DNA of 54,654 bases from Macrostomum lignano. Lineage: Eukaryota. The stretch is from contig NIVC01001427.1 in the NCBI GenBank assembly GCA_002269645.1, positions 227,146 through 281,799 of the forward strand, given 5' to 3'. This document shows positions 38,801-53,800 of the stretch, piece after piece; position 1 is the stretch's first letter, and each line of letters opens with the position of its first letter. Made by a program: the position numbers and the translations under genes. The notes under the pieces were generated by a model. The model made no database searches and was not told where the DNA came from. It saw only the letters and a list, made by a program, of their open reading frames with translations.

Positions 38801-41800
38801 ACACCAGAGTGAGGGATCTGAGGGACACCAGAGTGAGGGATCTGGGAGACTCCAGAGTGAGGGATCCGGAAGACTCCAGAGTGAGGGATCCGGGAGATAC
38901 CAGAGTGAGGGATCTGGGAGACACCAGAGTGAGGGATCCGGGAGACTCCAGAGTGAGGGATCCGGGAGACTCCAGAGTGAGGGATCCGGGAGACTCCAGA
39001 GTGAGGGATCCGGGAGATACCAGAGTGAGGGATCTGGGAGACACCAGAGTGAGGGATCCGGGAGACTCCAGAGTGAGGGATCCGGGAGACTCCAGAGTGA
39101 GGGATCCGTGAGACTCCAGAGTGAGGGATCCGTGAGACACCAGAGTGAGGGATCCGGGAGACACCAGAGTGAGGCATTTGGGAGACACCAGAGTGAGAGA
39201 TCTGAAGGACTCAGAGTGAGGGATCTGGGAGACACCAAATTGAGGGATCTGCGAGACACCAAATTGAGGGATCTGCGAGACACCAAATTGAGGGATCTGG
39301 GAGACTCCAGAGTGAGGGATCTGGGAGACACCAGAGTGAGGGATCTGGGAGACACCAGAGTGAGGGATCTGGGAGACTCCAGAGTGAGGGATCTGTGGGA
39401 TCTGATGGATGTGATGATGGTGTTTTGCTAGCAGCAAGACCCGCAGACATTCGCACAGCTTGCACTTCCCAACCTCGCCGTAGGACATGACCGAGCGCTA
39501 CTTCCTCGGAATTTTCTGCGTGGAGGCCCTGCTGAAAATCGTGGCCCTGGGTTTCATCATGCACCGCGGCGCCTACCTGCGCAGCATTTGGAACATCATG
39601 GACTTCGTAGTCGTGGTCACGGGGTAAGCACACATGCCAGATTTCACTAATACCGAATTAAGCATTGTATCTTTTACCACTAGAGGCTTTTAACTGTGTT
39701 GAATTTCAAACCCCCAAAAACTGAATTGCTGGAAGCCGCGGTCCTCATGGGCGGCACCTCAGTTTCTTCCATCCAAGCCGAGGGACTTTACAGAACGGGG
39801 TGTAAAGTTTGCGAAATCAATTTGGGCCGGCAGGGAGGCGACTCTCAACACAGGCCGCAGAGCAGAGGGGGCGGCAGCACTTGTCATTCAGAGCGCGGGA
39901 ATTGATCCGGGAGCGGGCCGGGGGGGGCGGCTGTGGGTCCCCGTCTGCCCCTGAGCGACAAAGCCGAGGAAAGCAGAGGGGAGGAGGGGGAGACGAGGAG
40001 CAGCCGGTCTGACCGGTTTTGCTCGGCGCGTCGCCTGAATGTCTCAAGGGATTCGCGAGGCGAGGCGGAGACGAGCAGACAGATTGCTCACAGTGTCCCC
40101 ATGGAGACTGCAGCAGCGCCTTATCCTGTTGGGTGTGGGATTGGTATTGAGCAATCTATGCGGTTGTTGTCAAAACTAAAGTATTTCATTTCGAATTTTG
40201 CAACGAGGGCTTTTTTATGACATGACTCGTGCGCCCTCGGCTTACCCGGCCTTTCGTGCTCATCGCTGCTTATTGATTGAGCCCTCTCGCCTTGTTTTGC
40301 ACGCGGCTTTCAGAGCTGCGCGTCAGCAAAAAATTTTATGCCCAAAGTCTGCCTGCTTGTTTGAGCTTTTAAAGTTCCTCCTTTAAACTGACTGCTCAAA
40401 GTGGCTCAAGTTGGATGGAGAGCCGGCAAACAGAATTCTAAATATAGCTGCCTGTCTTACCTGCCACCGCGCCTCACTCAGCTCTCAGCTCTGCTCTCAG
40501 TCTAGCAGTCCCCCTGCTCACTCAGCTCTCAGTCTAGCAGTCCCCCTGCTCACTCAGCTCTCAGTCTAGCAGTCCCCCTGCTCACTCAGCTCTCAGTCTA
40601 GCAGTTCCCCTGCTCACTCAGCTCTCAGTCTAGCAGTTCCCTTGCTCACTCAGCTCTCAGTCTAGCAGTCCTCCTGCTCACTCAGCTCTCAGTCTAGCAG
40701 TCCCCCAGCTCACTCAGCTCTCAGTCTAGCAGTTCCCCTGCTCACTCAGCTCTCAGTCAAGCAGTTCCCCTGCTCGCTCAGCTCTCAGTCTAGCAGTTCC
40801 CCTGCTCACTCAGCTCTCAGTCTAGCAGTTCCCCTGCTCACTCAGCTCTCAGTCAAGCAGTTCCCCTGCTCACTCAGCTCTCAGTCTAGCAGTTCCCCTG
40901 CTCACTCAGCTCTCAGTCTAGCAGTTCCCCTGCTTGCTCAGCTCTCAGTCTAGCAGTCCTCCTGCTCACACCGCTCTCACTCCAAACTCGCAGGCTGCTG
41001 GCATTCATTCTACCCACATTCGATCAGCCGGCCCTGAGGTCACTCAGGGTCATGCGGCCTCTCAAACTGGTCACCGGGTTTGAGAGTAAGTAGCCATGCA
41101 GTCCCCCGGAGACTGCGCTGTCGGCCAAGCGCGCACACTGCCGCGCAGAAGCCCCGGTTGCAGGTGTCCCAGTCGGGAAGATCAGGCCTCAACACTGCTT
41201 ATATATTGATAAATGTACTTCGTTTGTCTTGTGTACAATATATTAGCGCACTGTCCTAGGCTCAGAGTCCGGCTTTGTAACTGCAGCGAACCCCGACTGG
41301 CCCGGTGAAGTTTTCAAATTTTGTTTTCACACCCAAAGCTTTTGTCCCCCACCGCAAGGCACCCCCTAGACCAACCTCATTCAAAGCACCAATGGCATAT
41401 TTATGCAATGTTCAAGTTGTCTTGTGCATAGGAGAGCCCAGTGCCGGTTGTTGCACTGTGTAGCAGTAAACAACATGCCTGCATACTTAGCTTTAATCAT
41501 AGTTGATTTTGTTTTTCCCCAGTCGGTCAGGCAGACCTGAAGACGCCTCCGTAGACTGCAGAAAGCCAGAAACTGTGTAGCTGAAAGTTGCGCAATCTCT
41601 CAAGCTTTGCATGCCAACCAGCAGCTGCCCTCTGCATCCGAAGCAAAGCTGATGTTGTTTGCTATCGCAACGCGCTCTTTGCAGGTTCGTCACCCTGTTC
41701 GCCTCCAACCAGAGCAGCTTCGACCTGCGGACGCTGCGGGCTGTGCGGGTGCTGCGCCCGCTCAAGCTGGTGTCCGGAATCCCAAGTATAGCAGCCCATC

Positions 41801-50800: not shown

Positions 50801-53800
50801 CAGACAGACACACAGACAGACAGACAGACAGACAGACACACAGACAGACAGACAGACAGACAGACAGACAGACAGACAGACAGACAGACAGACAGACAGA
50901 CACAGACAGCAGACAGACAGACAGACAGACAGACAGACAGACAGACAGACAGACAGACAGACAGACAGACGGACAGACAGACAGACAGACACACAGACAG
51001 ACAGACAGACAGACAGACAGACAGACAGACAGACAGACAGACAGACAGTAAACCTCCCCATTTGGCACGGGACGCACCAGGTGCTGACCAGCGAGGACTG
51101 GAACATGGTGATGTACGCGGGCATTCGCTCGCAGCGGACTGCCAACTCGTCCGGGATGTGGGCCGCGGCCTACTTTGTGATTCTGCTGCTCTTCGGCAAT
51201 TGTATCCTTTGCAAGCCACCGGGATTTCGCGAGGGGGTCCCAGAGTTTGATTGACAGTTTGTGCTTTGTTACTGTGCTCTTAATGCAGCACGAGACTCCA
51301 GAGTTTTCAGTTGTACATGAACTACCACATGCATCCGCAATCCATGAAGTCCCGAATGCTTTCCCAGTTGTGTAAAAGTTTTTTTTTTGACCAAGCTTCT
51401 GCAAATGACTCGCATGCCTCTCTGCCGGCGATGCCCGGTCCCAAACTCAGGCTTCAACCTTTGCCCGAATATCCATGTCCGCCAGCATTTCCTATCCGCT
51501 GGAAGACTGGATCAGCCCTGACATGGCTCATTTAAATCAGACGCAAATCGAATTGAGATAATAATTTGTTTATTCGTTCCACCGCGCCGCCCAGATTCTG
51601 ACAGGAGAGGACTGGAACCTCGTGATGTACTATGGCATCAGGTCGCAGGTGGGGTGGGCCAGGGCATGGCCTACGCCACGTATTTCATCCTGCTGGTGCT
51701 GTTTGGCAACTGTATCCTAGCAACAGCTGGCTTATTCAATTTTAATACATAGTTTATCACTTTTTTGTTTATTTCTTCACACTATTAAGCTTACTTTCGC
51801 TCTATCTTCATTTTTTCTAAAAAAAGTCCTACAATTGAGTTTCAATTTTACTCTGTTGCTAAGTTAGCTTTCATTCTGAGCACTTTCGGCGGCACTCCTC
51901 ACTGGTAATGGGCTGCTTTACCTTGGGGCTCCGGACACCGCACACCAGTTCAGTTCAAGGCTGCAACTCTCACGGAGCGATCAGCGTGCATGCTGACTTC
52001 TGCATTGGCTTATTTTATTAATATTTAAAAATTGTTACAATACGCATCTCGCTAGCTCATTGCATATTTTAATTCTATATAGCAAGCATGCCGGTTTTCA
52101 TTACAAATCAGAGTAGCTGACTTGGGTTTCTTGGAAACCGGGGCACTTGAGCACTGGCGTGAGAAGTGTGAACCAACTGGAATGTCAAAACCGACTGCTG
52201 GAGAGCAGAGGATGGGGGAGCACTGTAGTAAAACTGATGCAGGATATTATTGGCCACAGTCTCTTTAGCAGCAGCAGCAGCAGCGGCGGCTACTCATCAA
52301 TCAAACCACAAGCTGAGGGAGCAGGGGGGACCCCGGGACAACTGAGGAAGAGAGGAATTTTTGAGCAGGCAAAAATGATGAAAGTTTTTATTGGCACAGA
52401 GACCGGGACGAGGAGAGTCCAGGAGACTGGTGATGGGGCGGCAGCGGCAAGTTTGAACAGTCAATGAGAGAACTGCGATTGTAAAGTGCACAGCCCGGCT
52501 CCATCTGAGCTCCCAGTCTGGCTCTCCCCCAGATTCCAGCTCTGCGTGCTGCACGAGCGTGCAGCTGAGCAGAAGCGTTAAGCTGCCAATTGAACTTTGA
52601 GTAACAATAAATTCTATCGCATAATATCGGTATGAACGTTGCTTATTTAATCGCTACTGATTTCTCCTATTCACTGCCTGAGAACTATTTAAACTACAAT
52701 ATCTATTTGCATTTATACAGCCTGAGTTTACCTTGCACTTGTCTGACTCGTGCTTAGAGTGCGCACTTTTCGGCATGGAAATGCCTGCGAACTTCACGTG
52801 TTTTCCGAATTTTCCTTAACCTAATACAACCGAAAACCAACCGCGTCAAGACACTCTATTGAACGTGTTTCTGGCCATCGCCGTTGACAACTTGGCGAAT
52901 GCTCAGGAGCTCACGGCCATGGATGAGCAGCGCGAGAACGAGGAGAAAGAGGTGATGAAGGGGGAGAACTCTGTGGGATGCAGCTGAGACTCTCGGCTAT
53001 TTAAATTTGTCTCTAAGTGTCTAGGCTAAAAAAATAAGGTCCCGAAGGTCCCGAAGGTCTCGAAGGTCCCGAAGGTCCGAAGGTCCCGAAGGTCCCGAGG
53101 TCCCGAAGGTCCGAAGGTCCCGAAGGTCCCGAAGGTCCCGAAGGTCCCGAAGGTCCGAAGGTCCGAAGGTCCCGAAGGTCCCGAAGGTCCGAAGGTCCCG
53201 AAGGTCCCGAAGGTCCCGAAGGTCCCGAAGGTCCGAAGGTCCGAAGGTCCCGAAGGTCCCGAAAGGTCCCGAAGGTCCCGAAGGTCCCGAAGGTCCCGAA
53301 GGTCCCGAAGGTCCCGAAGGTCCGAAGGTCCCGAAGGTCCCGAAGGTCCCGAAGGTCCCGAAGGTCCGAAGGTCCGAAGGTCCCGAAGGTCCCGAAGGTC
53401 CCGAAGGTCCTACATTGCCTCCTCACACTCCCGCCCGCTCCCACCGAACTCCGACATCAAAGAAGCGAGAGGAGATGCTGCGCACGGAGGCCGAGGCCGA
53501 GGCCGAGCAGGCGGATCCCGCAGCGGCGACGTCGAACGCCCCGATGCTGAACGTGGTGCCGCCAACGCCGGGCCAGCTGATGAGCTCGTCTGCCGAGCCG
53601 CAAAGGTTCGACTAGTAAGCGCCTGGAAGCATGCAAATTCATGAAGCTTCGGTAGGGTTTCCAGACTATCATTTGCAACCAATGCGTCCAAACTTCCGTT
53701 AAGCAGCTGCAAGGACTCAAGGGAGCCTGGCGAGGGCGACAAGCTCACATCGGAGTCGCGGCGACTGAACGGCCTGGAGGCGGAACGGGGAATCTTGAAT

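Follow-up and report, generated by a model that had tools for sequence, protein, structure and literature searches.

Tandem alternative exons for voltage sensors are already known in four-domain channels. In vertebrate Nav1, exons 5N and 5A are mutually exclusive, 92 nucleotides (nt) long and encode IS3-S4, the S3 to S4 region of domain I. The Drosophila Cav2 gene cacophony (cac) has an IS4A/IS4B pair, as an earlier note on the DNA studied here had correctly stated, and the choice between the two exons alters activation voltage and active-zone/synaptic localisation (PMC11828482). The partition of such exons between paralogues is likewise known, since, of two ancestral mutually exclusive pairs, both survive in CACNA1C and CACNA1D, and CACNA1F and CACNA1S have each retained a single exon per pair (Abascal et al. 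2015, PMC4494069). Two Cav2 genes, Cav2A and Cav2B, have been described in Schistosoma mansoni and the planarian Dugesia japonica (PMC3930560). Here, we analyzed a 54,654-nt stretch of contig NIVC01001427.1 (the window) from Macrostomum lignano, a free-living flatworm described as basal (PMC5730564). The window carries a Cav2 gene with three exon pairs, 5a/5b (IS3-S4), 13a/13b (IIS3-S4), and 16a/16b (pore II and the start of IIS6). The best explanation as a whole, to which we give a probability of roughly 70%, would be a Cav2 gene with three tandem, most likely mutually exclusive pairs, in which ancestral pairs have been kept that elsewhere were split between paralogues.

The gene, a calcium-channel alpha-1 gene on the + strand, runs from about 36.3 kilobases (kb) to the end of the window, which holds its 5' half with domains I, II, and the start of III. 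Against solved structures it scored 659, 632, and 605 bits with human Cav2.2, Cav2.1, and Cav2.3, compared with about 498 bits with Cav1.2 and about 332 bits with Cav3. Named database matches were mostly Cav2-type (N-, P/Q-, and R-type), with Cav1/L-type channels in the tail of the list. The filter motif is TMEGW in domain I and TGEDW (16b) or TSEDW (16a) in domain II, the filters of domains III and IV lying beyond the window, and a beta-subunit binding motif is present in the I-II linker. Judged by these matches and motifs, the gene is a Cav2 gene. The paired exons and the exons around them are as follows (a slash marks an exon-intron border):

39484..39623, + strand: constitutive exon, IS2-IS3, upstream partner of 5a/5b; ends in phase 2 (..GTCACGGG/gtaagc)
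40994..41085, + strand: exon 5a, IS3-S4, 92 nt; splice sites cag/../gtaagt
41685..41785, + strand: exon 5b, IS3-S4 of the universal type, 101 nt; splice sites cag/../gtatag
42961..43107, + strand: constitutive exon, IS4-S5 linker to IS5, downstream partner of 5a/5b
45747..45859, + strand: constitutive exon, IIS2-IIS3, upstream partner of 13a/13b
46458..46570, + strand: exon 13a, IIS3-S4, 113 nt; acceptor cag, GC donor TAG/gcaagt
47239..47351, + strand: exon 13b, IIS3-S4, 113 nt; acceptor cag, GT donor AAG/gtactg
48962..49093, + strand: constitutive exon, end of IIS4 to IIS5, downstream partner of 13a/13b
49432..49504, + strand: constitutive exon 15, pore II turret/P1; U2-type donor CAG/gtggga
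51081..51201, + strand: exon 16a, 121 nt, selectivity filter, P2 helix, loop, and start of IIS6; acceptor cag, in frame, consensus U12-type donor T/gtatccttt
51595..51711, + strand: exon 16b, 117 nt, textbook pore II with its halves in different frames; acceptor cag, donor T/gtatcctag, U12-like with one mismatch
about 51646..51654, + strand: frame-change site of 16b, TCGCAG/GTGGGG (here the slash marks the change of frame), one G short compared with an intact exon
52813..52820, + strand: U12-type branch site TCCTTAAC, 30 nt 5' of the exon 17 acceptor, common to the introns after 16a and 16b
52851..52951, + strand: constitutive exon 17, rest of IIS6 and start of the II-III linker, downstream partner of 16a/16b

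The six paired exons had been proposed in the earlier note, and their exact positions were borne out, each with splice sites. The acceptor is AG in all six exons, and the donor is GT in five and GC in 13a. Each of the six copies in the 54-kb window was matched by Cav2 proteins of other animals, with E values of about 1e-9 to 1e-13. All three pairs consist of two homologous exons adjoining inside one intron interval, and a scan of the gene in the window found no duplication of any other Cav2 exon. It had also been claimed that 5b, 13a, and 16b resemble textbook Cav2 and that their partners are diverged. This held when 240 homologues were scored: among those scoring at least 70 for the given pair, 105 of 110 favored 5b, 201 of 225 favored 13a, and 220 of 226 favored 16b.

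The members of a pair share 61-69% identity in DNA and 50-62% in protein. Silent-site difference within pairs was 0.68-0.71, which is near saturation, versus 0.27-0.34 at replacement sites, and in each of the three pairs silent change exceeded replacement change 2-3-fold. For example, the peptide RLLRIFKVT is common to 13a and 13b and is coded with several silent differences. Saturated silent sites together with restrained replacement indicate that both copies have long been under purifying selection. In addition, orthologues of 5a, 5b, 13a, 13b, and 16b were present in other species. In the sequenced M. lignano line, a neopolyploid, 180 Mb lie in blocks at least 95% identical, and the redundant genome is hard to assemble (PMC5730564), which might suggest that the extra copies are assembly artefacts, either collapsed haplotypes or neopolyploid copies stitched together. 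However, the pair members differ at 31-39% of bases, far beyond what such blocks allow; three exons only are doubled, every pair standing between single-copy neighbors; and a tandem of 5a-type exon and 5b also occurs in the independent assemblies of Elysia and Lottia. Haplotype collapse, named beforehand as what might undo the proposal, is excluded by the saturated silent sites between pair members, and the artefact explanation is effectively refuted. Three genuine, old, and selectively constrained homologous exon pairs are supported by these comparisons, in IS3-S4, IIS3-S4, and pore II/IIS6 of Cav2.

Each pair changes a different part of the channel. In 5a, the outermost S4 arginine is gone (DLR to DQP), the S3-S4 linker is 3 amino acids (aa) shorter, SGIPS is replaced by TGFES, and an extra acidic residue stands at the start of the S4-S5 linker. 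Compared with 13a, 13b has an altered IIS3 and IIS3-S4 linker and the same S4 charges. In 16a, TSEDW stands in place of the TGEDW of 16b, so that glycine is changed to serine beside the domain II filter glutamate, which is kept. The outer loop of 16a is also one residue longer, an N-S-S sequon is gained, and the start of IIS6 is altered. Among the 240 homologues no counterpart of 16a was found, all of them reading TGEDW. Choosing between the exons would adjust the outer pore and the voltage sensing of domains I and II, the fly IS4 pair, with its effects on activation voltage and synaptic localisation, being the precedent for voltage sensing (PMC11828482).

The pairs resemble known systems to different degrees. 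As in pair 5, two exons in tandem, of which the upstream one is the variant, provide the IS4 voltage sensor of the Cav2 gene cac, and the two forms are one positive charge apart. The fly exons, however, are 99 bp each, and the first arginine, which is lost in 5a-type exons (DQP), is still present in the upstream copy of insects, together with an additional charge (VSRIPS). Because the charge patterns differ, a common origin of the cac pair and pair 5 is not established. In the Cav2 gene of the beetle Popillia japonica, an IS3-S4 pair was found at 9208-9306 and 30013-30114, 20 kb apart, and its upstream copy likewise has the extra arginine (VSRIPS), without the DQP/TGFES signature. The second cac pair affects the I-II loop, in contrast to IIS3-S4 and pore II here. 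Nav1 exons 5N/5A occupy the same place as pair 5 and have the length of 5a, but belong to another channel family and differ at 1-3 residues. In invertebrates, the domain II pore region is swapped by exons 12a/12b of Cav3 (PMC9694082) and by filter exons of NALCN (PMC3557258), with an effect on ion preference. In Cav3 the swap concerns the S5-P turret and in NALCN a filter residue (E or K), whereas in the Cav2 pair 16 the glutamate is kept, its neighbor is changed from G to S, and the outer loop and S6 start are altered. In the literature, no reports of an IIS3-S4 or pore II exon pair in Cav2 were found.

In parasitic flatworms, the members of pairs 5 and 13 were found in separate genes. The protein search with 5a gave flatworm matches only, among them Cav2 proteins of Dicrocoelium, Spirometra, and Schistocephalus that were 77-81% identical in IS3-S4 and carried a 13a-type IIS3-S4. 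The 13b signature ASLFE.IWQ occurred in a second flatworm set, consisting of a second Dicrocoelium Cav2 gene (on another chromosome-scale contig) and of Taenia, Schistosoma mattheei, Hymenolepis, and Mesocestoides. Proteins of Echinococcus and Clonorchis, taken as the second paralogue, have a 5b-type domain I. At the locus level, Schistocephalus has 5a-type, 13a-type, and 16b-type exons only, and Taenia solium has 5b-type, 13b-type, and 16b-type exons only, with the same exon borders. For both IS3-S4 and IIS3-S4, the kinds of sequence that set the two parasite Cav2 genes apart are the alternative exons of pair 5 and pair 13. In the parasites these kinds belong to separate genes with single exons, compared with one gene with pairs here, and for the planarian two Cav2 genes are published as well. 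Our type 1 (5a and 13a) and type 2 (5b and 13b) paralogues are not equated with the published names A and B.

Some further observations were made in the parasite loci. The Clonorchis sinensis gene model has the constitutive domain II exons and lacks exons 13 and 16, and the Echinococcus model lacks exons 11-13; these missing exons are probably annotation gaps. A search of cestode introns for relics of lost exon copies returned noise and nothing convincing, apart from one weak match in Taenia solium. This match, at 10303-10359, resembles exon 13 weakly (SLSLGRSFGFGSRVSAQFL; 590 nt searched, E = 0.003) and lies in the intron preceding the one 13b-type exon, which is where a remnant of 13a would be looked for, but it is too weak to call.

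Trees were built by neighbor-joining with bootstrap on short alignments, the gene tree on 455 constitutive columns. In the gene tree, the two parasite paralogues formed a clade without the window gene in 290 of 300 replicates, which makes the window gene sister to both; M. lignano joined one paralogue in 10/300 and the other in 0/300. A different picture was obtained for the exons. Exon 13b grouped with exons of the second paralogue (454/500) and 13a with those of the first (278/500), while 5a grouped with exons of the first paralogue (435/500) and these together with the mollusc upstream copies (493/500). Neither 13a and 13b nor 5a and 5b were sisters in any replicate (0/500 each), and 16a formed a long branch in the exon 16 tree. 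Compared with the gene tree, these groupings indicate that the exon pairs are older than the gene duplication. The phylogeny of exon copies suggested in the earlier note thus dates the pairs to before the duplication of the flatworm paralogues. Even if that duplication is older than the tree implies, the exon trees would still put the pairs earlier.

On this evidence, the 5a/5b pair would predate the mollusc-flatworm split, and the origin of the 13a/13b pair would lie in the stem lineage of flatworms. The gene would have duplicated later, leaving 5a and 13a in one paralogue of the sampled parasites and 5b and 13b in the other, while M. lignano would have kept both pairs in one gene and added 16a as a lineage-specific exon. 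Pairs 5 and 13 predate the duplication, and the two paralogues differ in which member they hold; this is the pattern known as splice-isoform separation, described for CACNA1F and CACNA1S. Those are vertebrate Cav1 genes with other exons, whereas the genes here are flatworm Cav2 and the undivided state is found in an early-branching species. A division into a canonical (5b/13a/16b) and a divergent (5a/13b/16a) channel, as previously proposed, does not agree with this history, since the parasite paralogues hold the 5a+13a and 5b+13b types instead. If the choices in M. lignano are coordinated, the expected partners are thus 5a with 13a and 5b with 13b.

Exon transfer would produce a conflict between exon trees and gene tree as well: through ectopic recombination or gene conversion, a second Cav2 paralogue could have donated 5a and 13b (or 5b and 13a) to the window gene. 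This would need two independent insertions, each beside the homologous exon and each with working splice sites and matching phase. Moreover, the tandem of 5a-type exon and 5b has the same order in molluscs, where one Cav2 locus was seen per species with no sign of a donor paralogue, and on constitutive exons the window gene stands outside both paralogues. An origin by transfer is considered very improbable.

Nor is an IS3-S4 pair peculiar to this gene: gastropods have the same tandem of 5a-type exon and 5b. In Elysia, a 5a-type exon lies upstream of 5b. In Lottia gigantea, three tandem IS3-S4 exons were found at 11299-11394, 11566-11661, and 12550-12654, two of the 5a type (without the arginine) and one canonical, so the cluster has expanded further in this limpet. 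The gene models of Aplysia and Bulinus include a 5a-type exon; the Aplysia locus is full of gaps, and a missing 5b there is uninformative. The rotifer Brachionus has 5b only.

From the arrangement of the exons, the three pairs are very probably spliced in a mutually exclusive way. When splicing of pairs 5 and 13 was simulated, inclusion of either single member kept the frame, and inclusion of both or neither led to early stops. Exclusivity of these pairs would be enforced via the reading frame. The GC donor of 13a is weak, which fits a regulated exon. The earlier note had claimed for every pair that the members have equal splice phases and that including both shifts the frame. Both statements are right for pairs 5 and 13 and wrong for pair 16, in which 16a has 121 nt (1 mod 3) and 16b has 117 nt (0 mod 3), and 16a plus 16b (238 nt) is in frame and open.

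For pair 16, exclusivity would instead come from spliceosome incompatibility. In 2002, Letunic, Copley and Bork reportedly described JNK (MAPK8-10) exons 6a/6b as exclusive through incompatible U2 and U12 splice sites. Pair 16 is similar in having a U12-type site on one side and a U2-type site on the other, which would block joining both or skipping both, but the gene is different and U12 dependence is here predicted from motifs. The donors of both copies are U12-type (16a, GTATCCTTT, with GTATCCTT at 51202; 16b, GTATCCTAG) and would pair only with the exon 17 acceptor and its U12 branch site. U2-type sites are found at the exon 15 donor (GTGGGA) and at the acceptors of both exon 16 copies. 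No U12 branch site (TCCTTRAY) was found between exon 15 and 16b (49505-51594), so there is none between 16a and 16b, and the sole downstream site for the pair is that at 52813. Joins of 16a to 16b or of exon 15 to exon 17 would mix the two spliceosome types and are forbidden in the proposed scheme. Elysia, Aplysia, Lottia, and Taenia have the same U12 intron after exon 16. In M. lignano, the intron after 16a or 16b would depend on the minor spliceosome.

Three side observations concern these splice sites. The U12 intron after exon 16 has turned U2-type in Schistocephalus (about 55840, gtacgc; the cestode type 1 paralogue) and in Brachionus (about 16537, gtaaca), and is kept in Taenia type 2, gastropods, and M. 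lignano. The first intron of the Cav2 gene (36569-36782) also looks U12-type, of the AT-AC kind, with donor GAGTGGGG/ATATCCTTT, branch site TTTTTCCTTAAC at 36745, and acceptor ..CTGCAC/GCCGTTCGAG 29 nt past the branch site, with no AG there. The intron after 13b (47352-47361) begins GTACTGCTGG and exon 14 (48962-48971) begins GTACTGGTCG. If the 13b donor were read through, the peptide would be VTRYCW, near the spliced VTRYWS, a likeness that may be due to chance or be a trace of exon duplication.

Several points weigh against the reading of three tandem, mutually exclusive pairs with an ancestral origin. For pairs 5 and 13, inverted-repeat scans revealed no convincing selector/docking RNA pairing, the arms found being short, imperfect, and not above expectation for 3 kb. 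The U12 donor of 16b has one mismatch, and the branch site lies 30 nt from the exon 17 acceptor, above the 10-20 nt usual in vertebrates; the spacing in Taenia is about equal to that in M. lignano. In the trees, the grouping of 13a is weak (278/500), the exon 16 tree is unresolved, and neighbor-joining on short alignments may let the fast-evolving parasites attract each other. Two protein searches, one with the canonical isoform and one with 5a, 13b, and 16a plus flanks, yielded neither a transcript nor a protein of Cav2 from M. lignano, no match exceeding about 77% identity; in the canonical-isoform search, all matches were of 1034 aa or less, and full-length channels were seemingly not returned. 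Finally, exon 16b has 117 nt where 118 are required and its Cav2 homology changes frame after GIRSQ, so that the spliced exon as assembled reads ..CCLATTLY* with a stop inside exon 17.

A docking candidate at 48444-48462, which pairs with 47295-47312 and 46656-46673 (78-83% over 18 nt), lacked comparative support, and no claim is made for it.

The result of the protein searches would also fit real pairs in which one member (5a, 13b, or 16a) is silent or rare, so that effectively one channel is made. The splice catalogue of Aplysia CaV2 lists no IS3-S4 pair (PMC10657410), despite the 5a-type exon in the Aplysia locus, which points the same way. However, silent members are hard to reconcile with the restraint on replacement change in every pair and with splice sites kept in all six exons and open frames in five. 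Furthermore, other flatworms have functional paralogues whose only exon at the corresponding place is of the 5a type or the 13b type, and the 5a-type exon is part of the Aplysia and Bulinus gene models. Silence or rarity of one member is thus unlikely.

The defect in 16b leaves more room for an alternative. In the splicing simulation, 16a alone kept the frame and 16b alone, as assembled, broke it. The earlier estimate of up to 8 variants hinges on this frame-broken exon and cannot be upheld as it stands, since the in-frame combinations as assembled are 2 x 2 x 1 = four. One added G restores a Cav2-like reading of 16b (intact form, CAGGGTGGGG, 118 nt; defective form, CAGGTGGGG at 51646-51654). 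Alternative splice sites that might rescue 16b were considered, and none was workable. The exon carries either a one-base misassembly or a fresh disabling change in this genomic copy. It is quite possible, at somewhat less than even odds, that 16b is decaying or already dead in this genomic copy, or acts there as a "poison" exon that breaks the frame, in which case the gene would make 16a-type (TSEDW) pores only, in four variants. The missing base, the frame change, and the stop in exon 17 agree with this, the 16b donor (GTATCCTA) is weaker than that of 16a, and in a neopolyploid genome one redundant copy can decay (PMC5730564). On the other hand, both halves of 16b still have 65-70% protein identity to the orthologous exon of cestodes and molluscs, which means that the exon was functional until recently at least, and neither of the frames used contains a stop. 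The defect is a single base within a G-rich run, and every other exon of the gene is intact. If the window comes from Mlig_3_7, as a matching gene name suggests, it was assembled from PacBio continuous long reads (CLR) with Canu and polished with Pilon, and single-base indels survive in such a duplicated genome (PMC5730564).

The surroundings of the gene were also inspected. The window has about 50% G+C, with an AT-rich block at 1-4000 (G+C of 0.32-0.34 versus about 0.5 elsewhere), and an Rfam scan of it gave zero matches. A calcyphosin-like EF-hand gene (10030-10443 and 11063-11171, + strand) matches M. lignano BOX15_Mlig017698g2 with 100% identity over 169 residues, which identifies the species from the sequence itself; this protein occurs on three contigs, which fits a redundant neopolyploid assembly. 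Introns are rich in micro- and minisatellites, and long tandem arrays fill introns and intergenic DNA at 36926-39395, 40484-40979, 44134-44570, 50154-51048, 53036-53410, and 53857-54059, with many further arrays within 6.9-35 kb. The array in intron 2 has a 24-nt unit repeated 103 times. A 32-nt array stops 15 nt 5' of exon 5a and a (GACA)224 array stops 33 nt 5' of exon 16a, so two of the alternative exons lie directly downstream of unstable repeats.

As for the proposal of the earlier note that exclusive exons affect two voltage sensors and the pore, this part is very probable; eight variants are unproven, and the partition into two channels was wrong. Besides the IIS3-S4 and pore II pairs, two aspects are new. 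One is that the 5a-type IS4 exon without the first arginine, which is missing from the Aplysia splice catalogue (PMC10657410), is common to molluscs and flatworms. The other is a species whose alternative exons lie next to each other within one gene although they represent the very sequence modules by which the two Cav2 genes of parasitic flatworms differ. A broader picture can be drawn tentatively, and we regard it as rather doubtful. In it, the M. lignano Cav2 gene would represent the ancestral state of the two flatworm genes, 5a+13a and 5b+13b would be chosen in a coordinated way across 6 kb, so that one gene would yield two channel types, and the lineage-specific 16a (TSEDW plus the glycosylation sequon) would alter permeation or toxin/drug access at the domain II pore. 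If this is true, long-range coordinated mutually exclusive splicing was replaced by gene duplication inside one phylum. As M. lignano can be made transgenic, it offers a direct route to the function of the modules and to the coordination of their choice, and the answers would inform the biology of the two Cav2 channels in schistosomes and tapeworms.

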